Source: Geosiphon pyriformis uo1
Lineage: Eukaryota > Fungi > Glomeromycota
Assembly (NCBI GenBank): GCA_016748015.1
Contig: JAAOMT010000599.1
Location: 310,001-374,000 of the forward strand
Reading direction: 5' to 3'
DNA: 64,000 nt
Shown here in pieces: positions 2,157-58,618 of the stretch (position 1 is the first letter of the stretch; each line of letters begins with the position of its first letter). The notes beneath the pieces were generated by a model. It saw only the letters and a list, made by a program, of their open reading frames with translations. It made no database searches and was not told the origin of the DNA. The translations under genes were made by a program, and so were the position numbers.

Positions 2157-2744
2157 TTAATGATGTGATTGATGATATTTTCGATAATTCGTTGAACCGA
2201 ATGTGCCCATTAAAAAGAAATCCTCTTCATCCTCGCTGCTTTCATAATCATCGAGAAAATCCCAATCGTTATAATTAATTTCGTTACCGTTTGCGTCTTC
2301 TTCACAATAATCGTGTCTTTTAAATCGAATTACCGAAGAATATGTAGCCCTTCGCTCCATTCCTATTGAGTATTGTTCTTTTTCATGGAGATGAGAAGAC
2401 CTTGAAATATAAATTGGACTCGAATAATTGCTTGTTCTTGTCTCATAAGAGTCAGCAGGTGTCACTGGAAAGGAATTTTTGTATGAGCTTGAAAGAGAAG
2501 TAGAACTTGAATTATTGCTGGAACTGAGATAAGCTTCAAAGGACGGTGGCTTTCGTAAATGTTTGTGAGTTCGACTTTTGCCTCGTTTTTGTTTTTCTTG
2601 TTCCAGTTGATGAGCGAGAAAGATTGAATGAGTCGGTGAACATATTTCCATTGATTGTGTTTTTCTTCGAGAAACCCTTTTTAAAGCTGCTGAACCACTG
2701 TTGTTAACGGCTTTATTAATTGTTAATCCTTGTGTTCCTTTCAT
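2157..2744 (-). CDS. SPTHS/LRKPPSF-family low-complexity protein, paralog 1 (195 aa, single ORF); function unknown
   Basis: ATG-to-TAA ORF clearly GC-richer than its flanks. Contains ICSPTHSIF, HKHLRKPPSFEAYL, RRATYSSVIRF and an acidic tail (NDWDFL...EDEEDFFLM), collinear with four other ORFs in the window. Confidence 0.88.
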   Translation of the reverse strand: MKGTQGLTINKAVNNSGSAALKRVSRRKTQSMEICSPTHSIFLAHQLEQEKQKRGKSRTHKHLRKPPSFEAYLSSSNNSSSTSLSSSYKNSFPVTPADSYETRTSNYSSPIYISRSSHLHEKEQYSIGMERRATYSSVIRFKRHDYCEEDANGNEINYNDWDFLDDYESSEDEEDFFLMGTFGSTNYRKYHQSHH

Positions 2745-3818
2745 TTCGTTGAAAAATCAGTGGTGAAAAAAAGTTTGTAATAAAATTTTTTTTCAAATGG
2801 TAGTAGTAGTAATAATAATAATAATAATAATAATAATGATATTAATAATGATATTAATAATGATATTAATAATAGTAGTAATTAAGTATTCGTTAATGAA
2901 AATAAAATCTTTAACAACAACAATAACAACGGAAAATTTTTCGGAATAGGGATTATAAAATAAAATAAAAAAGAATTACGTTTCTTTAGGATTTAATCAT
3001 GCTAAGGGAGTAGACCCTTTTTATAATCAATTTCTCTCGTTTGACTTTATAACCTGTTTTAGATCGAAATCCCCGCCGTCGCTTCTTTGTCAACAAACAG
3101 CGTTTTACCGGGGTGATCTTGATTAAATAGATGGTTCTAGTGGCAAACAGGAAATAAACTTTTTGTAGCCACCACTTTATAAACCAGTTTAACAAACGTT
3201 AATAAATTATGATTCCACCAGTTCACCCGATGTTTTGCCTTTTAGTAAGGATTATCAGTTTGACTTTTGAATTTAAACTGCCTTTTTTTTCAGATCTTCA
3301 CTTTCTTCGAAATATCAGTATTAATGATATTATGATTACTTTTTCTATATCAGACAGTCAAAAATAAATAATGTTTTTTTCTGATAGTAAACCAAAAAGT
3401 ATTCATACCTTATCGGGTTTAACCAAGTGTTTAGTTTTAATCAGAAATTTCAAATTGAAATTGATAATTTTCTTGATAAATCACATGTTTAGGGAATTTC
3501 CCATATAATTTTATTGATTTTGTTTTTCTTTTCCCAGATGAATGAAATAAGGGAAAGAGGTTTGAAAATCCTTTTGGTTTGATTTAATTGCATTGAAAAA
3601 AATGAAAAATAGTTGGAACCTTCTAATTTTTTTGTTGACACTCGTAAAGAAACATGTTTTGAAAATGGAATGTTGTGCAATTTTTTCTGATTTCACTCTA
3701 TTTTTCAAGATTCTCTGACTACTCGTTAAAGGAGAAACTGAAACTGAAACTGAAAAAGTAGCCGAATTAATTGTTTACCATTTTAGTATGGCATTTTCGA
3801 GCCTCAACAAATAACTTT

Positions 3819-3884
3819 GATGATGATGATAATGATTATGATGATAATGATTATGATGATGATGATGATTATGATGATGATGAT
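3819..3884. repeat. (GAT/TAT/AAT)n trinucleotide microsatellite
   Basis: Directly visible; explains the spurious M/I-rich ORF 3817-4002. Confidence 0.9.
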
Positions 3885-4723
3885 GCTATTATTAAAATTT
3901 CCGGCATCTCTATTTTTTCATAAAACTTTGTGTATGGTGAAAAATACATCGAATGAACAAAAGAAACAAATTTTTGTATCAATTGGTAGTAGCATGACCT
4001 AAAAAGTAGGTTTGTTTGAATTAGTAAAAATTTATATAGTTAAAGATGAATTTAATAAATTTTGGGATAACTTTAAAAGGAAAGGAAATGGAAATGGAAA
4101 TGGAAAAGGAAATGGAAATGAAAAGCATCAGTTTTTTTTTTTTTGGTAATTTATAGTTAGTATATTTAAATAGAGTACTAAAAAAACTAATGATGAGCCA
4201 CTAATCAACTCACACCCACCATTTACTTGTGAATGAGTGGACTCAATTTTTATTTGGCAAAAGCCTGTTTAGAAAATATGGCTCTTTTTAGGAATAAGAT
4301 TTTTTTTGGGCTCATTTAAATTAATTGATACGGCAGATAGCAATGGAATATCAACTAAGCTTTTTTCTTGTGTGGTGTTATTTCTAAATGGGTTTTTTTT
4401 ATGTTTCCTAATAAATTTTATAATTCAGTTTTATATCATTAATATTCATATTTTTTTTTATTGAGAAAAGGCTGTTCAAAGAAATATTATGATATTCAAT
4501 AATTGATTATCAGTGATAGATGAGGATATTGATAAGAAAATAAATAAAATGAATCAACCATAAAAAAAAAACAAAAAACAAGGAGTTTCTGAGTCACGCC
4601 ATTATATGAGGTAGAATCTATAATCTTGTTTGAACATCTGTCATCAGCTGACTCATAGTCAATAATAGCGCTATATTCAAATAATCAAAGAGAAATGAAA
4701 GTTTTATTTAGTTTTACCCTTTA

Positions 4724-4775
<52 letters not shown>

Positions 4776-4814
4776 TATTAAAAAGTTTAAAAAGTTTGAT
4801 GTTGCAGGTGTTCA

Positions 4815-4970
4815 CCGCGATCCATAAATTCACGCGATTTTTAATTTGATTTTTGACGAATCGCGAATTCAAAGTTTATTGACCTCCTGCAGCTTCAAAA
4901 CGCCTTCGCTCGAAGGGCTTGAGGTCAGGTCATTTTTCATACGCACTGACTGTACAACGCTGATCGATAA
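4815..4970. promoter_or_regulatory. CpG-dense patch with three CGCG cores and a possible stem-loop; candidate regulatory element
   Basis: ccgcga, cacgcga and atcgcgaa lie within about 55 bp, followed by GACCTC...GCCTTCG-ct-CGAAGGGC..GAGGTC, in an otherwise CpG-poor background about 2.1 kb upstream of paralog 1. Confidence 0.3.
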
Positions 4971-5662
4971 TTTGAACTAACTTTCTTTTGGAAACTCTGG
5001 GTTTGTATAGGGTTTTGTTTGTTTTTTATTAGGTGATAATGGGGGGTCTATTGACCGATTTTTTTATTCTTGAATTTCTGTATGTTTACTTGAAATCGAA
5101 TTTGGAAACGTTGGAAGCTCATCAATTAAGTTGAATCTAAAGATCATCGTTAAAATCGATTGAAAATCCAGCTAAATCAAAAACTTTTGATTTCAATAAC
5201 TTGATGATTTATGAATTTTTATTGCTTTTTGACAAGATTTTTGGAAATTCAATATAAATTTACAAAAGCTCCAATTCTAGGAATTTTTTCTTTTTAATAT
5301 TTTTTCCTTCTCATCTTAGAAATGAAATATTCAAACGACAAAGTAATTTTTTTAATTTATGAATCTATATATAAGATATAAATGAATGTAACTCATAATC
5401 AAAATTTCTACAAAAAAACCTTCACCAGATGCAGATTAATTAAATTTTCCATATAAATTGAAAATTAATCTTCAGGAACGTTTATCAATAAATTTGATTC
5501 TCTCATCAAACAATCTTTCTTATAATTTAACCAATACATGCCGAACCCTAAATTCATGTGCGCGCACGAGTTTAATTTATTAAGCTGGTTTTTGATTTTC
5601 TTTGATGAGTATCTGTAATCCGTAATTTGAAAAAATGGTGTTAATAATGTAGATTTTTGTTA

Positions 5663-5784
5663 TGTTGTTATTGTTGTTATTGTTGTTGTTGCTGTTGTTG
5701 TTGTTGTTGTTGCTGTTGTTGTTGCTTTTGTTGTTGCTTTTGTTGTTGTTGTTGTTATTGTTGTTGTTGTTGTTGTTATTATTA
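5663..5784. repeat. (GTT)n-type microsatellite
   Basis: Directly visible; gives rise to the poly-N and poly-T ORFs 5580-5843 and 5660-5905. Confidence 0.9.
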
Positions 5785-7427
5785 TAAAAATTTCTGTTGC
5801 CGTTAAAAAAATCGAAATTGACAACCATTTCAAGATGTTCCAAATATTGTCTGTGTGGCTCTTGTATATAACAGACTTAAATAAATCAAAAGTACTCATA
5901 TACAAAGAATTGTTTTTTCATTGACTTCATGCCTATTTCACCTCTCATGAACTTTATTATTATTATTATTATTATTATTATTTATTTATTTTTTCGTTGA
6001 AAGAAATCTAGAATTTTTGAATTTGTGTTTTTAGGAATTGAAACTAAATCTTGACTAAATAGAATTTGTAGGTTGTGATGATCAAAATATTTTTAAATTA
6101 TTAAACTATTGATTTTTTGGTGAAATCATTAAATCCCCATTTGTGATTTTATACTACAAATTTTGAACTCTTAATAATCACTCGATGACAATCACCTAAA
6201 ATCGCAAAAAGGATGCTCCGAAAATGTGTGTGTTTGAGATATTCAGTAAATAGATTAAGGCTTCTCCTGGTGAAGATCAAAAGTTTCACCAATTAACTTT
6301 GTGTTACTTAATTCAGAAAACTCAAGAATAATCTATTTGAATTCGACATGAATTGCATAAGAATATTTAAGTTGGTTTGAATGAATGAATGAATATATAT
6401 ATTAATAATAATTTTTCTTGAATTTTTGTGGCACAGCGGAATTTTATAAAGATCGTCCGAAAACAATCTAAATACCCATATATATTAAAGCACTTTCAAT
6501 TCGAAAAACGAAGGTTTTCTGATCCCCGTCAGACATCACAACCCGTTTTACAAGGCAAAGTTACTTTTAAAATCCCAAGAAGTATCAAAGGTATAAATAG
6601 GAGCTTGCATTAAAGGTTCAAAAAATAAAAAATAATAATATGTCAATAAAAAAAAATTTTTTTTATTGACATATGCTTCTTGCAACATGAACAAGTTTAT
6701 TCCATTATAAAAACAGATTTCAAAAAGCAGTGTCATTGGATAACTCTTATTTTTCTCAACTTTTATTTTGATTGGATAACTTGATAGGCTTAGTTGTATA
6801 CAATTAATTGTCTTTGTATGTTGGACGAAAATTAAAATCAAATATTTTGACAGTTTTTGTAACGAACTGGAGACTTAAAAACTTGTTTAACCAAATTCAG
6901 AATAGAGTTAGTTTAAGCATGCATGCATCCATGCATACGTACATGGGGAGAATGAATACAAACTTTTTGGCTAAAACAATGACAAATAAAGTGTGGGGGA
7001 TTTATTTTTGTATCACAAAAAAATTTTTTTATTTTTTTAACTTGTGATCACTGAGTTCAAAGTTACGGCGTTCGAAAGTATATCATTACTAAGTAAAGTT
7101 AGATTATTTTGTGTTTCAACCATTTACATGATACTAACGAGAATTTTTTCAAAAAAGTTCAAGTTCACTAGAAGATGACAAAAAAATAGTTGGGAAAAAT
7201 GTTCCAGAAACGGAAATACAAAATCCCCTCTACTCTTTCGTAAACCCTGGTCTATGATATCATAAAATAAATGAGAATACAACAAGCTTGCCAGTAAGTA
7301 TATGACTCGCGGAGCCCATTATCTAATATTAAAAACCTGTTTAATAGTATTTAAACATCATCCTTAATAAATTGGAATCTTGATGTGAGACAGATAAATT
7401 TCAAGGCTTCGAATTTCAAGGCTTCTA

Positions 7428-7468
<41 letters not shown>

Positions 7469-8282
7469 GCACATCACATTTGATATTTCACTTTTTCGGA
7501 GTCATGAGTAACATGTTAACATCTGAAAATTCTCCTTAAAAGCTTCGCCACTATTTTCAAGTCTATTTTTAGTCCACTGCTAAACAATATTCTTTTGTGA
7601 AAGAGGAATAAGATAAGAAGTAATATATATTTGGATGAGTGAACTTTTTTGAACGGTTGAACTGAATTCAATTAGGAAAGAATGCAGGATTTTGACCCGT
7701 GTGAGGATATGAGGCTTTTATATTTAAGTGGCTAATTTTCCTTACTCCTTATCAAATATGGATCACGTTAAATCTTGATTTTTTGATCTTCAAAAAAATT
7801 TTAATTGGTTAAATCTCGATATTTTCCCTAGTTAGGTTCAAAGGAAATGGCTTGGTTTCTCATTATTATAATCTAATGTTCTTTTATTCTAAACATCATG
7901 CAAAGTGAATTTCTAATCCCATTTGAAGCTGGCTTAGTGTTTTTTTCATGCACATCCAATTTTGAAAAAGATTAAATTCTAAAAAAATTTCAAAAGCTTC
8001 CTAGTTTTCTGAGAAATTAATTGTTTCATTTCGTAGTTTATGATAATTTCCCGGTTGGCTAAGCTAATTTTCCTAAAACACATGAAAAGCATTTTGCTTT
8101 CACGCCTAATCATAATTGATAAATCATTAATTAAAAATCATGTGATTTGGAATTTTTAGTATAGGCAATTGCTTAAATAAGTTAAAACTGTCAAACTGTC
8201 AAAACTTGAAACTTTTCAGTTGTAGTAGTGGCCTATTTGCATGTTCTATGGGATTCAGATTTGAAGTCTTAAGTGTCAGCTT

Positions 8283-8600
8283 ATAGATATATACATAGAT
8301 ATAAATATAGATATAGATATAGATATAGATATAGATATAGATATAGATATAGATATAGATATAGATATAGATATAGATATAGATATAGATATAGATATAG
8401 ATATAGATATAGATATAGATATAGATATAGATATAGATATAGATATAGATATAGATATAGATATAGATATATATATAGATATAGATATAGATATAGATAT
8501 AGATATAGATATAGATATAGATATAAACATAAATATAGATATATATATAGATATAGATATAGATATAAACATAAATATAGATATATATATAGATATATAT
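8283..8600. repeat. (ATATAG)n hexanucleotide microsatellite, about 0.3 kb
   Basis: Near-perfect tandem ATATAG units with a few variants; explains the (RY)n and (IS)n ORFs. Confidence 0.97.
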
Positions 8601-10307
8601 AATTTTTTATTGTTTGACTTTTATAACAAGAATTTCAAGAGGGATTTTTTAATATTTTAGAACCTACCAAAATTAATTTAAACTTTTTAATCTTTTTTGT
8701 TGTCGAAAAAATATTTAGCAATTGTATCGTTTCAATTCCTTGAAACCATTTTCGTTTTCAATCTAAAAAATAAAAATAAAAAATAAAAATAAAAATAAAA
8801 ATAAAAAATAAAATAAAAATGAATCTATAATCTCTTCAAGATTAACTCTATTATTTTGATTCTTTTGAACGAGTTATTTAAAAATATATCTATTAAAATA
8901 GGAACAAGTTATTTAAAAGTATATTTATTAAAATAGGAACAATTTGAATTTTTCTCGTCCATTTTTTAACTTGAAACATGAAAAAAATATCAAAAGGTTT
9001 CGGATCAAAACATTATTCTCAATGAACCAAATAAATTTTTAGTAAAGAAAGTGAGAATAGAATGATAAGAAAATTCTTCTTTCGAGGTTTATCTTTTTGT
9101 GTACTATTCTAAACTTTGCCTTTCGCCAAAAATTGTGATCACAAAAGATTCACAACCTGCTTGAATATTTTTTAACGAGAAAACCAAATACCAATCATTC
9201 GAAAACAAAAAAAATACAAAAAAAAAAAACAATAATCAAAAATAAACGATTGTTTCATGTTAAATTAATATTTCTTTGAAAAAAAAATTTTAATTGGTAA
9301 ATTAGGTGAATCAATTTAAAACTCAAATAGTCATTCTCAGGTCAAAGTTAGATAATAATCTAGAAATATTTTTGATCTGCTTTTAACTAATGTGATATCT
9401 TTTTTCTGTTTGTTAAATTTTCTTTTTCGAATAATACCTAAAATGTGATATTATGAAAATCTTCTTAAAAAATACCTAGTACCTATTATAATTATTTTAA
9501 AAGTGATCCCACAGGGAGAATGCTCGCATTAATAATCTCTTTATGTTCCCATTTTGTAACATACTACCATTAAAGAAAAATCTTGTGTAACTTAGTATTA
9601 GCAATTGCCGATCTGATTGAAAACCTTAATTTTCCCTCCATATATATATATATATATAAAAATATAAATAAAAAAGACAATTTTAAATTTCTCACGCAAC
9701 TCTATGGTGAAACTTAAGCAACTGGTTGTGCATGATGTAGAAAAACGTAATGTATAGATGCTTGTAATGTATGACAAGGGAAATGACATTTGGCAACGTT
9801 TTTTTTTTTTTTTTTTTTTTTTTTGAGGTTCGGCTATTTCAATCGAAATTATTCCATATATGATGACTTTGGAAATGGTCAAACGAGTTTTCATATTAGA
9901 TTTACCCAATTTATAGACAACAAAAATGTCTGGTATATTGTTGTTGACTATTAATTTGCGCAAAAACCCTTCTGATTAATAAGACACACAAAGTACACTA
10001 AATAATGATCAAAGACAAAGGTCAAAGAAAAATGGATTGTTCATGAAAAAAACTTGTCCAGACATACACTGTCAGAAGTTCAAAGTTTTTTTTTAATAAC
10101 GGATAAAATGAATCGATGGTTCAATGAGTCAAGTGATCATTTGTTCCATAATTTGTATTATTGGCCAGACTTTCATTTAATATGCACTTTATAACTGGTA
10201 GATAATGTAAGAAACAAATAAACAAGGAGTGGCCAGCAAAAAGACAAAGGAGGCTTGCAAAACCTAATTATTCGGAGGAGAGTAAGATGATAAAGTTTTA
10301 AAGAGCA

Positions 10308-10341
10308 ATTATTATCATTATTATTATTATTATTATTATTA

Positions 10342-10376
<35 letters not shown>

Positions 10377-10435
10377 GTTATTATTATTATTATTATCATT
10401 ATTATTATTATTATTATTATCTTCTTCTTCTTCAC

Positions 10436-10483
<48 letters not shown>
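10308..10483. repeat. Compound (ATT)n(CTT)n(CAT)n microsatellite
   Basis: Directly visible. Confidence 0.93.
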
Positions 10484-10742
10484 GATAATAAATCTTGCCA
10501 TTATGGAAAATTTTTGATTTATTGATAATTATAGATACAAGTTTCGGCCGAAAAAATTGATTTTAGGAAATTTCAAAGCGCGAAAACTAAAAAAAAATAA
10601 AGAATTTTGGTACAAATTGAATCGTGGGGACATTTTGATGCACGTAAACACTAAGGGTTTAATCAATTTTCTCGCCTGCAGAAAAAATATGATGAGGTTA
10701 GAAGATTTGTAAGATTTCTACGTGAGTTGTGGTGAGATGTAA

Positions 10743-10795
<53 letters not shown>

Positions 10796-11440
10796 CATTA
10801 GTAGTATATCGAGCGGTGAGAACCTAAGGTTTGGGTCGCAAAGAAAAAAAAACTCGAAATAATGTTTTTTTAGTCAAATAAAAGGAATTGGTAACAAAAA
10901 GTGCCGATTTTAAGTGATTTTTAAAGCTTTTAAACATTTATATTTACAAATTTGAAGAAACTTTGGATTTTTCTCACTGGTTTTTTTTTTTTGGATAAAT
11001 TGATTGATAAACCTAATCTTTTTTATCACCATCATCCCTGACTCTTTCTTCAACTTTGCTTACGTAAAATGGGAATGATCAAAATTTAAATATATATTGA
11101 CTTATTTGGCAGTTTTTTTTGGGGTGCGGGGTGGGAAATTAAACAAATACAAGTATCGGAACTCAATTTTATCGCTGATATCTTGTAGATCTTTCAAGTT
11201 TTTACGAGAAATTTCCAAGGACGAAAAAATAACAAAAAGAAGATAAAACTTTATGGAAAATTTCACGCAGAGGTATTAATTTCCATGAATTTTTAACACG
11301 AACGTAATCGCATAATAAATAATGATTTTTAAGGTTTGGAAACGTCAAGAAACATTTTTGATTATGACACCACCATTTAACAATTCTTGAATGTGATTGA
11401 TTTTTAAATTCCTTCTATTAGCCATTATAACGTGTGAATG

Positions 11441-11821: not shown

Positions 11822-11841
11822 NNNNNNNNNNNNNNNNNNNN
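11822..11841. other. Assembly gap (20 N) flanked by poly-A
   Basis: Run of 20 n between A-rich tracts; true length unknown. Confidence 0.99.
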
Positions 11842-12717: not shown

Positions 12718-15414
12718 AAATTTTTAAAAAAAATCAGGTGAAGCTTAACTAATATTAAAGACAGTCAAGTTTAAAATTAAAAAAAAAAAAATAGATTTTT
12801 TATTTGTACAAAAATAAAAGAACACATACACTGCGCTCCACATACAGATCTTTTCGGAAAAAAGAACGGAATTCACCTATTTTGTGTAGGATATTAGATC
12901 TCATTGACTAGGTTAAAAAAAAATCAATCAATCAATCAATCAACTATCGTAAAAACTTACAAGAAAAAGTGATAAAAAAAATTTATATCAAAGAGATTGA
13001 TGATTATGAAAACATAATGATCACAGAAAATCAAAAGATTTCAAAACTTAACATACCCAAAGAGAAAATCTTTTTAATTTTTTGTCAAAATTATCTTTTA
13101 AGTTAATACCTGAAATTACATGTTTACGAAAATAATACAAATAAAAAAAGTTTCAAATTAAATTTATCAAATAAAAGACAAAAAACAGCTAGGTCAAACC
13201 ATTTAAAATTTTATCTTATTAAGACCCCGCTTAAAGTTAAAAAAGACTACCATGTTCACCTAAATTTAGATTGATCAATTGGAATGACGCTTGTAAATAT
13301 TTGTCATTAATTTTTTTCTTCAAAGAAAATTCTTGCCTTTCTCAATCAAGTTAGTATATGATTTCTAAATTCCAAACGTGGGCCTAAACACGTTTTGAGG
13401 TAACAATGTTGGCTGGCTATTTGGAGGTTGTTATGAGAATGTTGATTCATGCAACAATAAATTATACCTGTTTCTTGTGTTTATTAGTGTTCAATATATA
13501 TTTTCATCACAAAGAAACCACTAGACAAATTGTAAACCTTTGAAGCTTTCTAATTTGAACATAAAATACTTTGATAAAAGATATATCATCACAAGAATTA
13601 ACTTAGATTTGGAAATAAGATTTGAATAAAATATAGATAATCAATCAATCAATCAATCAATCAATCTAAAGAACCTGTCTTTTTACAGGTATTTCAAAAA
13701 ATGCGTTTTTTTAACTGCAACTTCTTCCTTCGTTCGTTCATTCCTTCCTTCCTTCCTTCCTTCCTTTACAACCTTTGCACCATAAGTCTAGAATAAAACA
13801 AAATTCACTATTCTTGCTCATCCAAATAATAGATGATCCATCACAAGACCTTTGCGCCATTCTCTTGATGCATATCATCCTTTTCAGGAAAAACAACAAA
13901 GTTAAATTCACCAAGCTTTTCTTTTCCATAAGTCCATTTGGACTTTTCTTGCTTTTTTAAAAAATCAAATTAGCGAGACTAGGGAGACTAGAATTATACA
14001 ATCATACAAACAAATTCCAAACTGAAACTTATTCTAAAAAAGGTCTCCTTATGGAAATGTTATGGTTTTATGTCCTATAAACTATTAACATTTTTAATTG
14101 GGAAAATGTTTCAGGTATAATTTGTCTACAAAGCACAATTTTAAATCTTCACCAAAAGAGGGTTAATTGAAACTTTTGGTAATAATTAAGTGAAAGTCGA
14201 AAAATTAAAGTTCGAACCTAACCATGTTTTATAGGATTCACCATAATAAATGGTGGTTGTTTTTGATAGATTCGGAGTGACTATAAATAATAGTTCCCGT
14301 TACAAAAAAACACTACGGCCAATAGATTATTTCATTCTAATTTCTTTTTGCATTTCCTCTTTGGAATTGTAATTTTTCGTAGACTAATCTATTCAGAAAT
14401 GTTACGATAGTTTTTCGGCGTGTTTTTAGGCCATTGAACAATATCTTCGTCCGAACAGTCAGGATCTAAATTAAAAAGACCATTGTTTTGCATTGCATTG
14501 CATTGCATTGGAGTAATTCTCCCAAATACTTTAGCGTCAAGATTAACTAGTGTTTAAGTTTTCTCAATCTTTCTAGGAAAGAATTTCTTAGGTATGTGAG
14601 TCACATAGAAAACTTAGTTTTTAACAATCTTTTGACGCGTGACGTATACCGATTTTGAAAGGAATTACAGGGATCAAAAATCGTGATCGTGATGACTAAT
14701 AAATGAAATCTTTTCGATTAATTTATTTTTCCCGTTTTCGGAATATTTTTCACAATTACTTGTTTCACGATTTTTTCAAGTTATTTCTTCTCATTTTTCT
14801 CACTTTAATTCTCCAGCGATATATTCATTTGGTTTTCCAGGTTAAATGAAAGAACGGTCCCGTGATCGCGATTAACTATTTTGTTGGCACTGGAATTAGT
14901 CTCATCAAAATTTATTATTATTATTATTAATTCTTATGTCTTTAAGCTCAGAATATAATTTCGGGAGGCTAGATTAAATCATGGAGAGAATGGGCTGGTA
15001 AAAAAACGAAATCAAATTGTCGTTATAATGTTTCGTTGAGATAAGGATCAATGATAAATTCCGTGAATACAATTTATTATGATTATTTTGGTGTAATGCA
15101 GATAAAATGAACCATACACCAAATTCACCTTATCTTCTACATTTTACGCTTATGGCCACAATCTAAAAAGTATTTAATGCTTAATTGCGGAAACGATAAC
15201 AATAAGATGAAAGGTTTTCTTGTATTTATCGAGATCCCTACCAAGACCCTGAATATTTCAGTTGAAGGCAAATCTGATTAATAGGTTAATAAAATATCAC
15301 CAGGGAACCACACCATAATCCCATTACATTCAAAATAACCAAGTTGTAGTAGATATCACGCATAACGCGATATTGCTTTATTTTTACAAAAAAAATTTCA
15401 TGAAATACACATAT

Positions 15415-17864: not shown

Positions 17865-18570
17865 ACATTCGAAAATTAAAAGAAACTGGAATCGTTGGTC
17901 GCCAAAAGGTAATGGCCATCCCAAAAAAATAACGCTTGTATTTCTAAAGCAATTAACCAATATTTAAGTCGAGATCCAGCCTACTCTTCTCGAAAAATTG
18001 CAACCAAATTGGTAGAGCAAGGCGTTGAAGTGTCTTATAGAACTTTTTCGAAGCATCTAGGTAGTTTAGGCTACAAAACTAACTTACCATCAGCAACCCC
18101 AGTGCTTACCAGTGCGCATGCAGTGTAACGTGTAGAATGGGCTCGAACTCACCTTAGCAATAATTGGAACCAAACCTTTTTTCAGATGAAATATCCTTCC
18201 AGTTATTCCAAAATACCATAAAACAAGGGCATAAAGAATCACGTCTCGTTCGTCCGATCGTGTAAAAATTTTTGGTTGAGTGGATTTTGCGCAAAGGGAA
18301 AAACGAGTCTGTTCTGTCTCCAGCAAATAATGGGCTCTTATTATTTTGAAATTTTGCAGAAACACCTACCTGAGATCTAAAGAATGCGAGATGTGTCTGG
18401 CGCTTCCAGCAAGATAATGATCCTAAACATACTAGTCGTGTCGCTAAGGCAATTCCTTCAGCCCAATATCCCTGAAGTTATTGACTGGCCATCTAATAGT
18501 CCCGATCTTAACCCATTGAGTATAGTCAAGAAGAACGGTGAAAGACGGCAGCCAAAAAATCTTGCAAGTG
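17865..18570 (+). mobile_element. Decayed Tc1/mariner transposase (frameshifted pseudogene)
   Basis: Fragments in changing frames: NIRKLKETG..GNGHPKKIT, RKIATKLVEQGVEVSYRTFSKHLGSLGY, WNQTFFSDE (first D), WRFQQDNDPKHTSR (second D), PEVIDWPSNSPDLNP. The following IENxW with the catalytic E is deleted. No TIRs found. Confidence 0.9.
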
Positions 18571-18663
18571 TTCCGGTTACAGTGTTTAAACTATAACAGA
18601 TTATCGAAATATTGTGCAATAAAAAAAGGAGAAAACTTCATCCCACATGCCAGACACTAGGGA

Positions 18664-44883: not shown

Positions 44884-45117
44884 ATGTTTTCAACTAGTTT
44901 ACCTAATATCCATCCTTTCGTAATTCAAAATCAACGAAATCGAAGTAATAGTTCTTCGTATTGTGCCTCTCCAACTCATTCCATTTTTCCACAAGAAAAT
45001 CGTAGAAAAAATTATTCTCATAAAAAATTAAGAAAACCCCAATCTTTTAATAATTATCTTTTACGTGGTCCTGATTCTTTTACTTTCGGAAATAACAACA
45101 ACAACAATAATAATAAC

Positions 45118-45158
<41 letters not shown>

Positions 45159-45166
45159 TAATAATG

Positions 45167-45209
<43 letters not shown>

Positions 45210-45567
45210 CAATATTGTGTTAGCAGAAGACCAATTTACATCCTATCATTCGTCTTACCCTAATTTTCGACGCCAAGAAAGCCATCATCATCATCATCAT
45301 CATAATCACCACCACCACCATAATCAAGCAACATCACCTCCATCACCTCCATCACCTGCATCAACACCTGGATTGCTTCGACGTGTTTCATCTGCAATGC
45401 GTCTTAGTTTTATCGATTCTTGGGCTATCGACGAGGTGAATAATTCGGCTAGTGGAACTAGTTCAAGTAATAATACGGATGATGAGTGGGATGAAGATGA
45501 GGAAGACGAATATCAAGAAAAATTTCTTTTCATTAGTTCTAAATCACGATCAGCTACTCGACGATGA
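44884..45567 (+). CDS. SPTHS/LRKPPSF-family protein, paralog 3 (227 aa from the first ATG) with long poly-N and poly-H tracts
   Basis: ATG at 44884 (the listed start 44875 is TTG). Contains RNRSNS, CASPTHSIF, HKKLRKPQSFNNYL, LLRRVSSAMRL, NNTDDEWD...EKFLFISS. Confidence 0.92.
45091..45213 (+). repeat. Coding (AAT/AAC)n microsatellite encoding a roughly 40-residue Asn tract with a few Asp
   Basis: In frame within paralog 3. Confidence 0.95.
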
Positions 45568-46147
45568 AGTTCAAATGGTGGCAATAACTAATAAGATCAG
45601 TTATTCCGCTTGAGGCTTAAAACCTTGTCCGGTATTTTTGATCCTCACTAAACAACCCATATAAGAGTAAAACTCTTTCTGATTTTCATCATGGGCTTTG
45701 TTTAATTGCGATTAGCCACGCATTAGAGAATTATCAATTAAACATGGACGAATCGAAGGTGGCCAGAAAAGATTTAGTGAAATCTAGGAATCGTGTTTGA
45801 GTTATTCAATTGAAATTTTAATCTCGATTCAAAATTGAATTTTCAAGGGGAAATTCGGTTCACGAATTTCACAGACTAAAATATTATGCAATGGAATTCA
45901 AGAAAAAAAAAATTTAACCAATGTTCAAAAAAAATAATTTAAAGTACTCTTTTGAATCTCATTTACTTTGTCTACTCACTTTGATAATTAAAAACCAAAC
46001 TATCATAACAACTTTCTCAATATGCAATTAAGTTTCTTTTAAAAAAGACATTTATTATGGGACTTTTTTATAAAAATGTATATAATGAACATTTAGTAAT
46101 ATATTATTTACATTATAATTTTTTGTGTAATAGGTTGCCATTTTTTA

Positions 46148-46323
46148 ATATATAAACCTTTCATGTCTTTATTTTTTTTATCATAGAATATATTAATGTA
46201 TTTACTATATTAGATATATAGGAATCAGTAATAAAAATTTAATATAAACCTCTCATTTCTTTATTTTTCTTATCCTAAAATATATTAATGTATTTAATAT
46301 ATAAGAATCAGTAATAAAAATTT
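46148..46323. repeat. Imperfect local tandem duplication of about 85-90 bp
   Basis: atataaacct..cat.tctttattttt..tatc.ta.aatatattaatgtattta....gaatcagtaataaaaattt occurs twice in tandem. Confidence 0.8.
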
Positions 46324-47173
46324 CTCCTTTCAAAAAGTGAAAAAAAAAAAAAATGTTTTGCATCAGCAGAATTTATTCAATAGATGGGGATTACAAAAAA
46401 TAAGCTTTTTAGATACACACACGTAAATTTATCTTAATGAACTTGATTTTAATGATCTGATTTGTAAAAACCCCGCAACAAAAGTATACTAGATACGATA
46501 ACTTTAAATTTGTTCGTTTAGAATGTCCCAAAAATGGGTAGAACCTTTCCTTTTCCTCATCACTGTTTCTATTCTACTCAATCTGACATTATTCTGCTTC
46601 CGAATTTGATCTATAAGTACATAAGTGACACATAAGGCCGGAAATGTTTTTCTCGAACATTTGTACTACAAATCATTTCATCATAATGACGCAGATATAA
46701 ATTGAAATTATTTATAGAAGTTTGAAAGAAAAATAGATAAAAAAAAATATATATTTTTTTATTATATAGTAGCTCAATTGGGTTGACGTATTAACCCTGG
46801 TGTGTTTTTCGATAAAGATCTGTGATTATATTAATTTTTCACGATTCGGTCGGGTGCCCACAGTACTGAAACTCTTTAGATATTCTATGCTGATATAATT
46901 GAATGAAAAAAATATTCCTAAAAACTGGATCACCAGGATAAACTCGTAAAACAAAAATTATTGGGAATTTCGAAAAATTAAATCTTTTTAAAAAGTTTAT
47001 TTTAAAGAAAGTCAATCAATTATCTAAATTATTTAACATATAATATGACTAATTATGCCGTTTGAAAGTTTGTGGCTAAGAAATAACAAATGACGAGACA
47101 TTTATTTCTCATGACTCCGCCGTATATTTTTTTATGGTAAAGGCTAAGCTTTAAATAGTTTCATTGATTGTTT

Positions 47174-47217
<44 letters not shown>

Positions 47218-47266
47218 TTTCTAATTAAACTATTATAGTTAAAAATTATATATATATCTATACATA

Positions 47267-47302
<36 letters not shown>

Positions 47303-48589
47303 TGTATGTCTCTGTGATATGAAGATGACAATATTTTTTTTTTCGAATAATATTGTGATTGAAAACCCAGCTTGCGGAAATTCCCCTTGCGATTAATTTC
47401 ATTTGATTGAATATCCTACGTGTCAAATTTTTGCGACTCTATTGATCCTCAGGTACCAACTATAAATGGTTTGGAAGAGTTAAAATTTCTTTATGTAATT
47501 AGATCATTACTTTTATATATATTGTTATTGAAGGAAAAAAATTTTCCTTTTGGCTTGCGCAATTAATTTCATCACCACCTAAACAATCGAATCTAATCTT
47601 TATAAGTATAGAATATTCTAAATAACATAAAAAATTAATGACTAATTTTTGCTTACTATCTTTTATATATAAGAAGTTAGAGAGATTTTTCTCTCTTCAA
47701 AAGATTGAAATTTTAACGTTTTTTTCATATTTCTTTTGAAAGTCAATAAAATCTAAAAAGAATTTTTATTTTTTACCCACTGTCTTCTGTGATTGTTCAT
47801 TTTTACAAAACAAAGAAAAAAAAATTTGATTGCGTTGTCATTTCGAGTTTCTACTACTAAAGTTTAGCCAAAATCCAGGGGATTTAGAAATGTAAAATAC
47901 GAGATATATATTTGATCCATATTTTTCGTTTCGACAAGAATAAATTTAAAAACCAGATTATTCCCGTATTTTTTCAATAGAGATTACAAAAAAGGATTAG
48001 CAAGTTTCGTGAAATTAATCTCATTCTTTGACTCAATACAATGGTGAAGGTTGCTTGAACGCTCTGGAAAATCTCAAAATTGTTGAAAATAAATTTCGTA
48101 TAATATTGATGATATAATCGATAAGCAGAATTTTGAATACCCCCTGATTTAAAAAGTCCCGCGTCACAGTACAACTATTAAAAAGCGAGACCATAGTCTC
48201 GTGGCTCGGGACTCATTAAATCGACTTAGAATGTTAAACCTTTTTTGGTCTACCTTAATCGCTGATCAAAAAATTCAAATTATTATGAAGTATAAAAACC
48301 AAAACGCCGTTCAATTGTACCGCAACCCCTTCTGACCTTCATATAGTAATTCTCCCGATCATGATCATGTATGTACTAATACGTCAGAGTTCTCTTGCGA
48401 CTCTCCAGGATTATCATCATCATAAAAAACTATAAATAGAGCCACCATTTTTGATTGTTTTTCTCCCATCTTTTCTAAGTAAAGAATAAAAAATCAACCT
48501 AAGCATATAAAATCAAGAAAAATTAAAATTTTATTTTTAAAGTTTATTATATATATATATATATAAATATATAAATATATAAATATAAA

Positions 48590-48971
48590 ATGTTCAATCA
48601 CAGTAACCATAGTAATAACGATAATTTAACAACAAATTTATCAAATCCTCATCATCACCTTTTTAACAATCAAAAGACGGGTAGATTTCGAAGTAATACT
48701 GCTCCATCATCAATCGTCGTAACTATCTCTCCCACGCACTCAATTTACCTGACAGAACAAAAACAAAAACAACAAACGAAACGAAGAAAACGACGAGTAC
48801 AAAAGCATTTACGTCAACCACAATCGTTTGATACATATCTTCATTCTCGTTCAAATTCTATTTCTTCCATCTCATCGTGTGATAGTAGTATTATGTCTTT
48901 AAATAGTCCATCGACATTAGTTTTTCATTACCCAAATCACATAAATAATTCTACTGATTATTCCACATCAC

Positions 48972-49003
<32 letters not shown>

Positions 49004-49249
49004 CCACCATCACCATCATCTATCGAACAGCATAGTGTGCCTTCATTTATCTCCAGTTCAACGGAAATTTTACGACGTGTTTCTTCTGCAATTCGACTCT
49101 CAAATCTCTTGGAAACATTTAGCGATGATGGTAATAGTAGTATCGCGAGTACTATGTGTTCTAGGAATAATAGTGATGACGAATGGGATCCAAAAGATGA
49201 TGAATCAGAGGAAGAATTTTTGTTTATCAATTCGAAATCCGTGATATGA
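48590..49249 (+). CDS. SPTHS/LRKPPSF-family protein, paralog 4 (219 aa)
   Basis: ATG in AAAATG context. Contains RFRSNTAP, TISPTHSIY, KRRKRRVQKHLRQPQSFDTYLHSRSNSISSISSCDS, ILRRVSSAIRLSNLLE, NNSDDEWDP...SEEEFLFINS. TATAAATA at about 48431. Confidence 0.93.
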
Positions 49250-50399
49250 TTTTCGTAAAAAACATTTATTTCATTCTACAAACATTAAATAAATTCAATC
49301 TTTGCATATATGATAGTTACCAAATTCTTCCTTATTAAAAAAACAATTAAAAATCTACCAAACTCTCAATGTTATGTCATTGTCAAGATATTTAAGCTTT
49401 TTCTCATTTATCATTTTTCATTTATCATTTATCATTTTTTTTCCTGATTCAATTCTTTCTTAATCTGTGTGTAAACATTTTTTAACATATCACTTTTAAA
49501 TTCTGAAATATGTGTTGCATCAAAAGCAATTGGAATTTCTTTGTCGATTTAGATGAATCAGGCTTCATTTTCACATATTTTTATTCATTACCAACATATT
49601 TTATAAAATTGTATTCATCTATCATTATTATAACATACAATATATATTTCATCGATTGTTCAACTTAAAAAACATTTGAATCATACTCTATTGGAATCAT
49701 CAAGTCAAGCTATTTTCAATAAATGAATAGTTAAAACAGGAGAAATAAAATAAAAAAATGGAACAATCATTTTTTTTTAACCCCCGACGTTGAACGAAAT
49801 GAAATTATGATCTTTTTTTTTTTTCTATTTCCAATAATGGAAAATTTTTTTAACCAAAAGTCTTTATATTTTCAAAAAAGGGGCAAAACGTCATCATTAC
49901 AATCAAATACCATTGTGAGTTTCACTTGATTTGTTTTGTGTAATTTGTTTAATCTGATATAAAAACATGTTCCTTTGAAGTCACAATTGGAGATATATGA
50001 CATAGATGAAAAAGATTTAAAGTAAAAATAAAAAAGAATATATTTTTAAACAGAAGTGTACCTAATTTAAAAATACGTTTTTACCTGTATACGATATCAT
50101 TTTTCGAGAATATTTACCTTTTTGGAAAAAATATTTTTCAGTTATCAAATGATTTCCTTTCCACGGAAAAAGTTATTCAAATAATATGATCTGATTCAAT
50201 TTCAGCCCAGTTCATTAGTAAATTTTCAAAAAAAAAATTTTTTATGGCCGGCAGTAAATTTGTCATCAATAAACTTCAGGGGCTTTATGAATTACGAATC
50301 GAGTCCAAACATAACATTGTTAAAATGTAAAGATTATCTTTTTAGAAAAAAATTAGTTTTGGTCTAGTTTACTGTTTTTTTTTGCCAAAAATCCTTTGT

Positions 50400-53300
50400 C
50401 TTATTATAAATAATATAATTTTTTGTTTTAACATTTAATTATTAATCAATCATTTTTCAAATAAAAAATGTGATTCAATTATTTTTATTAATTGCTGCAT
50501 TATTTGATATTATTTTTATTATTTTTTATTATCTTTTTATTATTTTTATTATTTTTTATTTAAATAATATAATTAAGTTTGATCTAGTTATTATCTACGT
50601 ACATGCAATAAAGTTATTATTATTATAAAAATCTTTGTACATTAATTTATAAATTAATAAACTTAATAAAATTATTTATTGGAAAGTTTTTTCTTTTTAA
50701 TAATAATAAAAATGTTAAAATATTCATAAATTAATAATAACTAAAAAATTAATGATAAAAAATGATATTTAATTGAAATAAATAATTTTTTTTTATCAAT
50801 AAATTTAAATACTAAAGTTTAAATTAATTATTTTTATAAATAACTACATTAATTTACCAAAAAAATATATTTAATAAATAATTTTTACATAAATTATATT
50901 GTTTTTGTTAATAACATATTTTTTTTAAAATAAAACAGATTTATATATTATTACAATAAATTAAAAATTAATTTTTTGTTAATAAAAAAATATTATTATT
51001 ATTATTTATTATACGCTAAAAATATTTTAAACCTCATAATTTTCAAAAAACAAATATCAAATTTTCATAAATTAATCAAAAAAAAAAGTTGATTGTATAT
51101 TTTATGTTTAAGTTTTTTTTTTTTATTGATTTTCAATTTTTTATTTATAATAATTTAAATAATTTTATAAAAAAAAAAAAAATTCTTTTTGTTTTTAAAT
51201 TCAACATTATTTTTTTATTTTTTACTCTTAATTATTATTTATATAATAAATATCATTGACTAATTAATTTAATTTACTATATCAAGAGATTTATTATAAT
51301 AATAATTTTTAAATAATAAATCTTTATTTTAAAATTATTTATTATTGTATTAAGTCTATTAATATAATTTTATTAAAATAACAATTATTTTAATAAAAAC
51401 CAATTATAAATATTAATATAATAACTAAATTTTTAAATTAAAATTCAAAAAAATTTAATTTAATTTAACTTTATTACAAAATAATAACACCAAAAAAATT
51501 CTAGTAAATCTATTATTAAAAATATTAAAAATAATAAACAGCTTAAAAATATGTTTAAAAAACCAAAAAAATCAATTTTGTAATTAAAACTTATTTATAA
51601 TAATATTAATAATTTATTTTTTTAAAAAATTAATTTAATATTATTATTATTAAAAATTTTATTAAACTAAAAAATAATATTAATATATCTTTAATAATAC
51701 TTAATATTAAATAATTTAATAATAAACATGTTTAATTATGTACTTAAATAATTGATTAATTTTAAAGACTGTATATTTAAAAAAAAAAAGGTATTTAAAA
51801 AAATTATTTAACACAATTATTTAATATAAATAATACAATCATCAATTTTTTTAATTAAAATTAATAAATTAATTTACTAATTCGATTAGTAATTGATTTG
51901 CGATTTTCTAGATATAAATAAAAAGACTATTTAAATCTATTTCCAGTTTTTTAATTAGATTAACATCAATTATAAATTAAAATTTTTACTTTATTTCTGT
52001 TTTTAAGCTTAATTTTTTATTGTTTTTTGCTAATTTTGCTTAAACATAATTATTAATTAGTTAATAAAATAGTCTTAACAGATTTAATAACTTTAAAATA
52101 AATTATATTATATTATTATTTACCAGTTGGTTTTATTTTAATAGCAAAAATTTTAATTAAACATATTAAAAAAAATTTTATATTATAATTATAGTTTTTA
52201 AAAGAATATTATATAAAACAACAACAAAAAAAAACAATAATAATATTAAAAACCACAACAGATTTTGTAATCTTAAAAATAATAAAAAAATTAGCAAGCA
52301 CAATTTTAGTAACATTATTCAAAAAAAAGTAAAATACAAATTCTATACAAAAAAGTTTAGTATTGTTTTTAATAATTAATTTTATATTAAAAAAATTAAT
52401 TGGTGTTTAAAACATAGTTTTAATATAAATTATTTTAATATTTGTAATAGTTTTAAACATTAAAGTAGAGACTATTTATTTAAAGAACTTTTAATAACTA
52501 GTAATTATTTTTTAATTATTATTAAAATTAATAGTATATTTAAAAAACCAAAAAAATAGTTTTAATTTCTATTTTATTAACTTAATCTTTGTAATTATAT
52601 AATATAATAAATAAATAAATTATTTTTTACATTAAAAACTAATGCAAATTTTTTTGGTAAATTATCAATTTATCGATTATTAATTTGTGATTAATGTTAA
52701 TAAATTCTTGTAGAGAATTTGATTCATTAATATTGTATATTACAACTTAATTAGGATTTAATAAAGTTGTAAATCCAACAAAAAGTAAAGAAAAAAATAA
52801 AATTTTAACTTTTTGTTAACAATATTTATTGTTTGTTAAGTTATATTTAATTATGTTTTACTATTAATATTAATTACATTTGAGTTTAAATATCACAAAA
52901 AAATTTTTAATAATATATATTAAAAGATTATTTATTGGTACATTATTTATTTTGTTTGAATATACATATTTTTTTAATATAATGTTATTTCATAAAATTA
53001 TTCAATCAATTATTTCATTCTTCGAAATAATAAAAAAAATGTCATTTTTTTAATTTTTTAAAATGTTATAAACAAATAATATTGTATTATTTAAATTTTT
53101 AACAAAAAAACACTACTAGAAAAACTAGTAGTGTTTTTTCATTTGGCAAAGATAATAATATTGTAATATATATTAAACTATTATGCTTTATTTTTTTGTT
53201 TAAAAAAATTTTTACTTGTACCAAAAACTGTTTTGTTATTTAATTTATCATAGTATTTAGTTTAATTATTATTAAATTTTGAATAAGTTAGTAAAAAGAA

Positions 53301-54180
53301 TAGAGTCATAAAATATCATAAAAACAAAATAAAAGTAAAGACAAAGTTATCAGAAGAAAACTACACGTTCAAATACTGTTTTACAAGTAACTAAGCATAG
53401 AATAACATAAAATTGAAAAACTATTGACTGCACAGCTAATCACATAATTTATTACATATATTTGACATTCATTACATAGTGAAATTTATTACACTACAAT
53501 TAGTTCATAACAAAGGCGAATTATAATATAATATTTGTTAGAAGTTACCTCAAAAAATATATATAATAATTTGTTATATCAAGAAAATGTAAAATATTAT
53601 TTGTTACAGAACAAATTTGTTACAAAATTGGTTCATTATATCGAAAAGTAACTAAGTAACCAAGTAACCAAGTAATTTATATAATTAATATAATAACGTA
53701 AACAAAAAAATCAAATATTAACTATTTTTATCGAAACTATTAAATCACTCCATGTTTATATTTATATTATAATTTATTAACATAATTTTTTTATTATATT
53801 ATAATTAATTAATAACTATTTATACAATTTCTTTTCTTTTTCTTTTAATTATGCTTATTGAATTTTAGTTTTTAATTTAAAATTTTGTGCGTTTTTAATT
53901 TTAAATAAATTTATCATATTTATATTTTTATTTTTATAAATTTGTGTAATTTAATTATTATTATTATTATAAATTTTATTTTTTTAAGTTTTTACTCAAG
54001 TTTTTTGAATTATTATTTTTTAAGTTAAAATAAAAACTAAATCAAAACAATTAATTTAATTCTATTAAATAATTTTTTAATCTTTATATTTACAATTCAT
54101 ATTGTAAAAAAAAAACAATTTCATTTTAACACAAATAGTTTTATTTAATATTTAATATAAATCAAAATATTTATAATTGT
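50400..54180. other. Ultra-AT-rich, CpG-depleted block of about 3.8 kb (probable erased repeat)
   Basis: Extreme AT content with local C-over-G skew; adjoins the LINE remnant. Confidence 0.5.
53105..53139. repeat. Perfect 15-bp inverted repeat with a 5-nt spacer
   Basis: AAAAAACACTACTAG-aaaaa-CTAGTAGTGTTTTTT. Confidence 0.9.
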
Positions 54181-56568: not shown

Positions 56569-56571
<3 letters not shown>

Positions 56572-56928
56572 CCATATCTTAAAAAGGAGTTAAAATTAAA
56601 CTATCATCACTAAACTTTATTTTTCCGTTATCTGTACCTACAGAGATCACAAGAAAACTCATAAATTGTCGATTTCGAAACAGTAAAAAAGCCAAATTAA
56701 TGTAATGCAAAAAAAAAAAACTCGATTTCTGGTCCGTGCCATTTTTGTACATGAGAAAATCAAGGAATGTAATTTATCGTTGAATGGGATTTTTCGTTAC
56801 GGAAAAGTCTTTAATGGCAAAGTAATGATGCATATGTACACACAGACTGTGAAATTTAAATGGGAAATTTTGGTGGGAGAAATCTTTTTTTTTTCTTTTA
56901 TAAAAATACTCATTATGATATTCAAAGG

Positions 56929-56982
<54 letters not shown>

Positions 56983-57699
56983 AGCTCCGATAATATATAG
57001 ATTAATCTTTCTCGGGGAAAAGTTGATTAAATTATGATATCACTCAAAAGCATGAATAATGATTATGAAAAACATTTTTATCACTAATGTACATTTTATT
57101 AAATTTTTAATTTTTGTGTGAAGGGAAGATCATATGTGCTGAAAAACAAATCATTAAAAATTATAATTTAAAATAATATATATATATATATATATATATT
57201 CACTGAAAAGAGATGTCCCTAGTTAATTCTTTAGTTTGAAAAAGTCAATTTTCTCATAGTGGATCGCGGGAAAAACCTTAGTACTCAGGTGACATTTCTT
57301 TCATTATTAATTATTTTTTTAGCTTTTCCCAAAACGCCTACTAAGCGAAAGAAAGTAGTCGTGTGATCTTATCACGCGATGGTAATAAGTTAACTTTTAT
57401 GCATAAAAGCCCCGAATTCAGATCAATCTGTGTTATGAATTTTTAGGTAATGCAAAAAAAAAAGATTTTCACCTCAATATTTAAAATAGTTCAAGTTCTC
57501 ATTAATATTCAAAAAAAAAAAAAAAGAATTTCTTTGGCTGTATTTTGAAATATTTAGATTTAAGATTTAAATTTGGAGAGATACATAGTGGTGGATTTTG
57601 TACTGCATAGTGAAAAAATTTACGGGTATAAACTAAATTCTAACATTAGAATGTGGTTTAAAAACTGTCAAAAATTTTGTTTATGGCTTATCTGTTGTT

Positions 57700-57732
<33 letters not shown>

Positions 57733-57943
57733 ATTATACCTTTTTTTTTAAAAAAAAAAAACTTTTTAAGTCTATATTTTGTTTTGATGTTAATGCAGTC
57801 TAGTAGTAAAACTATTTTTAGGTTTTAATCAAAGAATGAAACAAAACCTTTTACTTGATCATTATGATAATTATGATAATTATGATGATTACTAAAGACA
57901 AAAATTATCTTCATTAGATAATCATCTTTTTTTTTTTTTTACG

Positions 57944-58618
57944 TCAAAAACTACTCGACATTGAATGCCCACGTCGAAACAAAGGTCGCGTGATAGCAGA
58001 ATTTACGATAAAAAATTCTTCTTCCTCTTCTTCTTCACTATTTTCCCCGGCAGTGGATGTGTCATAAGTGTCAAAGTTATCACTCATTTGTGAATGATCT
58101 GTGTCAGGAGTATTGCATCGATCATGATGTTCAAAAGTGATTCCTAAACCTTCAGAAATACTCGCGAATTTCATCGTGAATGAATCTCTTCTCGGATTAT
58201 TAGTTGCACGAGTGTTAAATCCATTCGGGGAATGAAATGATCCTTGATATCCATAATATCTCGAATTTGTTTCACAGTTTATTGAATGATCCGGTGACGA
58301 ATCAACTGAACAAAAACTTTCGCTCGGTGAACTACTCCCTGGTGGACTCAAACTATCGCATGATGATATCGATGATGTTGAATCCGAGCGACGTAAGAGA
58401 TAAGTATCAAAAGAAGGGGGTTTACGTAAATGTTTAAAAAATTTACGTTTAGATTGTTTTTGTTGTTGTTGTAAAGCGAGAAAAACGGAATGTGTCGGGG
58501 ATGAGAAAGTAATTGATGTTTCGGTGTTGCTACGGGTACGTCTGTTATTTGAAGAAGAGGAGTTGAATAATGGTGATGTGGTGGTGGTGGCGGTGGTGGT
58601 GGTTGTATTATAGTACAT
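57944..58618 (-). CDS. SPTHS/LRKPPSF-family protein, paralog 5 (224 aa)
   Basis: ATG in AAAATG context. Contains RRTRSNT, FSSPTHSVFLA, KRKFFKHLRKPPSFDTYLLRRSDSTSSISSCDS, RRDSFTMKF, SEEEEEEEFFIVNS. Confidence 0.92.
   Translation of the reverse strand: MYYNTTTTTATTTTSPLFNSSSSNNRRTRSNTETSITFSSPTHSVFLALQQQQKQSKRKFFKHLRKPPSFDTYLLRRSDSTSSISSCDSLSPPGSSSPSESFCSVDSSPDHSINCETNSRYYGYQGSFHSPNGFNTRATNNPRRDSFTMKFASISEGLGITFEHHDRCNTPDTDHSQMSDNFDTYDTSTAGENSEEEEEEEFFIVNSAITRPLFRRGHSMSSSF

Follow-up and report, generated by a model that had tools for sequence, protein, structure and literature searches.

We asked what is encoded by five intact reading frames in a very AT-rich stretch of the genome of the fungus Geosiphon pyriformis. 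The stretch, hereafter the window, comprises 64,000 nt of contig JAAOMT010000599.1 (C776, positions 310001–374000) and has ~25% G+C, with deserts down to ~10–13%. On sequence evidence, the five frames (g1–g5) are real, ancient, intronless protein-coding genes of an undescribed family that was detected only in Glomeromycotina, the arbuscular-mycorrhizal fungi and relatives. Their products are small (~150–320 aa), rich in Ser, Thr and Asn and predicted to be intrinsically disordered. Open reading frames (ORFs) of at least 150 aa in the window were limited to these five, which are 195–318 aa long, all intact and arranged on strands −, −, +, +, −:

2157–2744, minus strand: g1, 195 aa, annotated publicly (P0002); SPTHS at 2625–2639, LRKPPSFEAYL at 2526–2558, RRATY at 2340–2354.
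36500–37456, minus strand: g2, 318 aa, with an internal (HS)n repeat, exact sequence absent from the public protein collection; SPTHS at 37286–37300, LRQPPAFDTYL at 37187–37219, RRVSS at 36767–36781, EEYEYV at 36602–36619.
44884–45567, plus strand: g3, 227 aa, with a poly-Asn and poly-His linker, exact sequence absent from the public protein collection; SPTHS at 44968–44982, LRKPQSFNNYL at 45028–45060, RRVSS at 45379–45393.
48590–49249, plus strand: g4, 219 aa, nearest to the family consensus, exact sequence absent from the public protein collection; SPTHS at 48728–48742, LRQPQSFDTYL at 48809–48841, RRVSS at 49073–49087, EEFLFI at 49211–49228.
57944–58618, minus strand: g5, 224 aa, annotated publicly (P0001); SPTHS at 58487–58501, LRKPPSFDTYL at 58397–58429, RRDSF at 58178–58192, EEFFIV at 58004–58021.

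The start of g3 was set to the first ATG (44884), a TTG at 44875 being an artefact of the bacterial-code ORF listing. The five genes are homologous, and their translations align as collinear motif blocks in a common order. SPTHS and LRxPxxFxxYL were recovered in all five copies by alignment and by a six-frame regular-expression scan, which detected no family motif outside g1–g5 in the window. Three of the five (g2, g4 and g5) carry RSxSxSSxSSCDS. The sequence LRRVSSA[IM]R[FL], referred to below as the RRxS block, occurs in g2, g3 and g4, its counterpart being RRATYSSVIRF in g1 and RRDSFTMKF in g5. An acidic tail closing with an aromatic/aliphatic quartet is common to the five proteins. The Pro codon of SPTHS varies across the five copies (CCG, CCT, CCA, CCC and CCG). 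At the base composition of the window, stop codons are expected at a frequency of 0.088 per codon (~1 per 11 codons), and ~0.002 open frames of at least 195 codons are expected by chance per window, compared with the five homologous ones observed. A first-pass annotation, made from the letters of the window, had described five homologous intact genes in this orientation, the collinear blocks at these positions and the differing SPTHS proline codons. The ORF listing and alignment agree on the first point, the alignment and six-frame scan reproduce the second and the codons were recovered exactly.

Genomic extent, taxonomic range and age

The 128-Mb, 792-contig assembly contains nine family copies, three of them added by a profile search of the entire genome: eight on C776 and a ninth, divergent copy on another contig. 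The eight span 287.8–368.6 kb, and the family is therefore locally expanded, as the first-pass annotation had it, with eight copies within ~81 kb of one contig and one dispersed copy. Three of the eight, u1–u3, lie directly upstream of the window:

C776 ~303.5–304.4 kb (L006:1078–2049), minus strand: u1, 323 aa, intact, exact sequence absent from the public protein collection.
C776 ~290.1 kb, minus strand: u2, 179 aa, intact, identical to P0014.
C776 ~287.8 kb, plus strand: u3, 219 aa, intact, identical to P0016.
Contig C642, 222.9–223.5 kb: d1, the divergent ninth copy, identical to P0022.

Five copies (g1, g5, u2, u3 and d1) are annotated publicly, the records reading ‘hypothetical protein’ or bearing no name; public proteins identical to Geosiphon copies include G9A89_022201, G9A89_022202 and G9A89_010622. 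The other four (g2, g3, g4 and u1) seem unannotated in the public annotation of the Geosiphon genome, because their exact sequences are not in a collection of 15 billion proteins and nothing similar to them appeared in an exhaustive profile search.

That search compared a profile of the five window copies with 1.84 billion representative proteins and returned 22 matches in total at E ≤ 1e-3. All organism-named matches belonged to Glomeromycotina (Ambispora gerdemannii, A. leptoticha, Diversispora eburnea, Acaulospora morrowiae, Geosiphon, Rhizophagus clarus, Glomus cerebriforme and Funneliformis geosporum), and three others, of Glomerales type, came from unnamed JGI, Logan and SRC entries. A word-indexed homologue search gave no match for g4 alone; with a 20-sequence profile, its matches were confined to Glomeromycotina proteins and a single JGI contig. 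Judged by these comparisons, the family was detected in three Glomeromycotina orders and, within search reach, nowhere else. In a scan of JGI metagenome contigs, 45 stretches fitted the family pattern and none of the 45 was a relative. Pfam-A yielded scattered sub-threshold noise only for the five window proteins (hmmscan, E ≤ 10) and for 20 members (E ≤ 1), a PDB profile search likewise returned noise and no match, and searching the literature by locus tag and by sample and run identifiers revealed no mention of the family. The suggestion that the family may be undescribed thus stood up to the profile search against proteins and Pfam that had been proposed alongside it: relatives were found in Glomeromycotina only, and no characterised family, structure or publication was matched.

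Across orders, KHLRKPPSFDTYL is kept almost letter-perfect. In Glomerales and Diversisporales, SSPTHS-phi-[FY] (phi, hydrophobic residue) is replaced by SSP(x)TTGSFYLP and the RRxS block reads RRGSSAxKVRF or RRSSSTTKFVRF; in Archaeosporales, this block reads RRVSSAIRF. D[DE]WD and EEE-[FY]-phi-[FM]-phi persist throughout.

To assess selection, the nine Geosiphon copies were aligned by codon, and Nei–Gojobori counts for 80 motif columns were compared with those for the linkers. Synonymous sites were saturated in every paralogue pair, the median proportion of synonymous differences (pS) being 0.70 for motif columns and 0.64 for linkers. The corresponding nonsynonymous proportion (pN) was 0.62, near random, in linkers, compared with 0.36 across the motif columns as a whole and 0.06 in SPTHS-phi-[FY]L. 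For the nearest pair, g2 and u1, omega was 0.14 in motifs compared with 0.45 in linkers; for most pairs, a linker dN/dS is meaningless, as both site classes are saturated and linkers are barely alignable. These counts support protein-level purifying selection confined to the motifs, as had been proposed from their differing codons, with the reservation that most linker alignments are unreliable.

The age of the expansion was examined using a maximum-likelihood tree and reciprocal BLAST. Four copies, g1, g2, g4 and g5, have reciprocal-best partners in Ambispora. In the tree, g2 and u1 group with Ambispora P0006 and P0004 (support 100/99). The partner of g4 is P0003 (44% identity over 172 aa), that of g5 is P0009 and that of g1 is A. 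gerdemannii P0012, a pairing with tree support of 81/79 in which both branches are long. Furthermore, g3 groups with Ambispora P0008 (80/93). Glomerales and Diversisporales sequences form a single clade (100/100), and orders outside Archaeosporales seem to keep one subtype.

Gene order provides a second line of evidence. On A. gerdemannii contig L013 (CAJVPL010001008.1), orthologues of g4, g3 and g2 lie next to each other at 4286–11128, with order kept and g3 inverted; no genes other than these three are called on the 17.5-kb contig, and the arrangement extends microsynteny across two Archaeosporales families. Other Ambispora contigs carry two or three adjacent copies, judged by consecutive gene numbers. 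Because of the reciprocal-best Ambispora orthologues and the retained g2–g3–g4 order, the expansion is older than the split between Geosiphon and Ambispora, and the array has been retained. In Archaeosporales, one ancestral gene would have expanded in place to at least five subtypes before the two lineages diverged, with the array kept thereafter. The first-pass annotation had called the family old and had put forward synteny as a check; saturated pS in all pairs, the four reciprocal-best orthologues and the conserved order with its inverted middle gene agree with it.

Nature of the proteins and candidate roles

Ser, Thr and Asn together make up 24–45% of residues. The linkers between motifs vary from near zero to >100 residues and contain poly-Asn, poly-His, (His-Ser)n and poly-Ser. 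Coding microsatellites were observed in g2 at 36745–37161, with ~25 units of (His-Ser)n, and in g3 at 45087–45327, with poly-Asn (~50 residues) and poly-His. Family linkers lengthen by repeat slippage, and the motifs remain fixed. Charge is split along the chain: the 24 residues before the core motif carry a net +5 to +9, and the final 60 residues a net −5 to −12.

AlphaFold2 was run on g4 with a 20-sequence alignment and predicted two four-residue helices only, with a mean predicted local distance difference test score (pLDDT) of 52 and a predicted template modelling score (pTM) of 0.18. Confidence exceeded 60 only in residues 71–90, a block that contains LRQPQSFDTYL. In the nine Geosiphon copies, the maximum 19-residue Kyte–Doolittle hydropathy was 1.17, and the maximum 8-residue hydropathy in the N-terminal 30 residues was at most 0.91 in all nine. 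Because of these low hydropathy windows and the polar N-termini, we find no transmembrane segment and no start resembling the signal peptides of secreted arbuscular-mycorrhizal (AM) fungal effectors, as judged by hydropathy. Disordered proteins lacking a folded domain, transmembrane segment or signal peptide had been expected from the first reading of the letters, and the structure prediction and hydropathy values are in line with this. In this they match intrinsically disordered proteins composed of short linear motifs (SLiMs): no fold is predicted, and conservation is confined to short collinear blocks.

Motif enrichment was counted over 24 members and compared with shuffled sequences. RRx[ST] was found in 20 of the 24 members (4.1 in shuffles), K[KR]x[KR] in 11 (2.7 in shuffles) and phi-x-x-phi-phi in all 24 (13.1 in shuffles). 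Based on this motif content, the proteins are probably lineage-specific disordered adaptors or regulatory subunits, with SLiMs that would dock folded partners and contacts that would be gated by basophilic-kinase phosphorylation. Each protein would then consist of short linear motifs in fixed order, separated by freely evolving linkers. The first, S-P-T-H-S-phi-[FY], may serve as a proline-directed site. It would be followed by a Gln-rich segment and a strongly basic patch resembling a nuclear localization signal (NLS), running into KHLRKPxSFDTYL, a near-invariant putative docking motif and the only part predicted with some local structural confidence. RSxSxSSxSS could represent a serine cluster for basophilic kinases, RRxS(S) would open a short amphipathic stretch and the acidic tail with D[DE]WD and EEE-[FY]-phi-[FM]-phi would complete the series. 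In this arrangement, folded partners would bind at the invariant motifs, and their contacts would be switched by phosphorylation of the PKA/AMPK type at RRxS and RSxS. Electrostatic self-masking between the oppositely charged basic and acidic segments may additionally be possible.

Several observations count against the picture of expressed, disordered, motif-based regulators. Low AlphaFold2 confidence obtained from a shallow alignment is no proof of disorder. The motif regular expressions are short and most do not exceed shuffles; SP/TP, CK2, AIM-like and FBW7-like patterns showed no enrichment over shuffled sequences in the 24 members. Four of the nine Geosiphon ORFs are missing from the public protein set, and annotators could have seen no support for them. 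Lastly, the sole public run containing this DNA (X1, of uncertain type, ‘probably DNA’) covers g4 only: three short contigs lie over g4 and its 3′ flank and none over g3, g4 being the only covered part of 44400–49800. One of the X1 contigs, 1,509 nt long, matches by its last 235 nt only and is probably a chimeric join through a poly-Ser repeat. The X1 contigs count neither for nor against transcription. Two environmental or run-derived contigs of unverified sample type, L014 (970 nt) and L017 (1,188 nt), encode Glomerales-type members followed by A-runs and might be mRNAs. A search for a shared upstream element in eight 600-nt upstream regions revealed no G/C-containing 7- to 9-mer common to at least five of them, a result within the shuffled range.

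A more specific proposal, which we consider unlikely, is that the proteins are regulatory subunits of protein phosphatase PP1 (Glc7), with the RRxS block acting as an RVxF-type docking site and the adjacent RRxS as a PKA switch that releases PP1. A comparable switch is RRVSF in muscle G_M and KNL1, and inhibitor-1 and DARPP-32 are small, disordered proteins with a PKA site, RVxF and an acidic tail. The family resembles these by analogy rather than homology: it is small and fold-less, places a basophilic (PKA-type) RRxS beside [VI]x[F] and has a long acidic tail. The combination of a basophilic site, [VI]x[FL] and an acidic tail in a small disordered protein is in keeping with this class of PP1 regulators. 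In addition, every Glomerales and Diversisporales member that has the block carries canonical [RK]x0-1[VI]x[FW], in the forms KVRF, KFVRF and KLVRF, preceded by RRGSS or RRSSS. In contrast, Geosiphon and Ambispora copies lack a basic residue before the [VI] of the block, and in several of them L, A, I or S takes the place of the final F or W (AIRL, AMRL, ALKL, AIRA, AIGL and GTRS). RVxF docking sites are accordingly not seen in Geosiphon, where g1–g5, u1 and u3 read VIRF, AIRF, AMRL, AIRL, TMKF, AIRF and AIRL, three of them ending in L. The ELM regular expression for RVxF matched 11 of 24 members compared with 5.5 in shuffles, and neither the SILK nor the MyPhoNE motif of PP1 partners was seen in the family. 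No homology to inhibitor-1/DARPP-32, G_M or KNL1 was detected, and SPTHS and KHLRKPxSFDTYL have no counterpart there. A predicted complex between a PPZ/PP1-type catalytic domain (public protein P0041) and residues 210–265 of g2 scored 0.00, which counts neither way.

It is similarly doubtful that the proteins are nuclear co-regulators, in which the KRRKRR-type patch would be an NLS and the acidic, W/F-rich tail (DDEWD...EEEFLFI) would, together with the phi-x-x-phi-phi core (FDTYL), make phosphorylation-gated contacts with the transcription or chromatin machinery, resembling those of activation domains. An acidic-aromatic composition is typical of such domains, and the tail of the family is highly acidic and retains W and F/Y; the enrichment of K[KR]x[KR] (11/24) and phi-x-x-phi-phi (24/24) over shuffles points in the same direction. 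Against this, no DNA-binding or known cofactor domain was found in the proteins, and half of the members lack a strict NLS in the basic patch.

There is very little chance that the genes are highly diverged members of a named fungal family, such as YBR071W-like proteins or DUF4667, in which case they would be neither Glomeromycotina-specific nor new. These are the nearest clusters in a language-model search (Ascomycota ‘YBR071W-like protein’, 0.80; ‘DUF4667’, 0.77), and they are likewise fungal and of similar length (~210–220 aa). However, scores of 0.77–0.80 are within the range reached by a third of shuffled proteins, that is, at chance level, and the recognition value of 1285 lies below the mark of 2300. 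DUF4667 (PF15700) gave no hmmscan match at E ≤ 1 among 20 aligned members; YBR071W was compared by language-model features only. Moreover, the exhaustive profile search gave no match named from outside Glomeromycotina and no Ascomycota protein.

That the ORFs are non-functional, as relics, repeat-derived sequences or chance-open non-coding DNA, is least credible of all and very unlikely in our judgement: four of nine are absent from the public protein set and the linkers are of low complexity (poly-N, (HS)n and poly-S), yet chance would yield only ~0.002 such frames in the window, all nine remain open at saturated synonymous divergence with motif pN far below pS, and orthologues are intact in other Glomeromycotina genera.

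Surroundings of the genes

The assembly is interrupted once between g1 and g2:

11822–11841, no strand: assembly gap, a run of N’s flanked by two poly-A runs in AT-rich intergenic DNA, outside every gene.

Separated from g1 by 9 kb and from g2 by 24.6 kb, the gap is crossed by no ORF or motif. The scaffold join matters only for the linkage of g1 to g2–g5, and family copies lie on both sides.

The sole other gene-like region of the window, at ~15400–17140 on the minus strand, consists of consecutive open frames resembling exons of one multi-exon gene. Within it are a long run of Asp/Glu and a segment of 148 aa, for which Pfam gave no match and the rest of the genome just two weak relatives (E values of 1e-6 and 1e-5). 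At ~17900–18600 on the plus strand, broken frames bear hallmarks of a Tc1/mariner transposase, including the helix-turn-helix-like SRKIATKLVEQGVEVSYRTFSKHL and IDWPSNSPDLNPL. G+C is highest in this part of the window (0.40), and the frames resemble the remains of a decayed transposon. The first-pass count of five family members among six intact genes was thus about right, the remaining coding matter being this one multi-exon gene and the Tc1/mariner relic.

Intergenic deserts of 10–14% G+C separate the family genes (32001–34000, 40001–42000, 50001–54000 and 62001–64000). A long hexanucleotide-type microsatellite at 8273–8602 is translated as (RY)n in one frame and, on the opposite strand, as (IS)n, and thereby generates spurious ORFs of ~100 aa.

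Implications

AM fungi are ecologically central and not genetically tractable, so conserved genes specific to their lineage offer one of the few ways to learn what sets their cell biology apart. On the timescale usually given for the group, selection would have held the motif string over hundreds of millions of years. The family is undescribed yet of a familiar type, a lineage-restricted disordered protein built from SLiMs, and on present evidence it reveals no new mechanism. A bolder version of the adaptor reading, to which we give little credence, would make it a Glomeromycotina invention, a hub switched by phosphorylation; it could, for instance, be an adaptor under PKA/AMPK control that docks PP1 or some other conserved enzyme through KHLRKPxSFDTYL, in signalling specific to these obligate symbionts. 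The ancient expansion to five subtypes, with its order kept in Archaeosporales, would then reflect subfunctionalisation tied to unusual symbioses, such as that of Geosiphon with Nostoc.

The results also reveal that public annotation of the Geosiphon genome misses intact members of conserved families, here four of nine. With its small intronless ORF and point-mutable motifs, the family is a concrete, cheap target that suits interaction screens, and it provides a clean conserved marker, detected only in Glomeromycotina.

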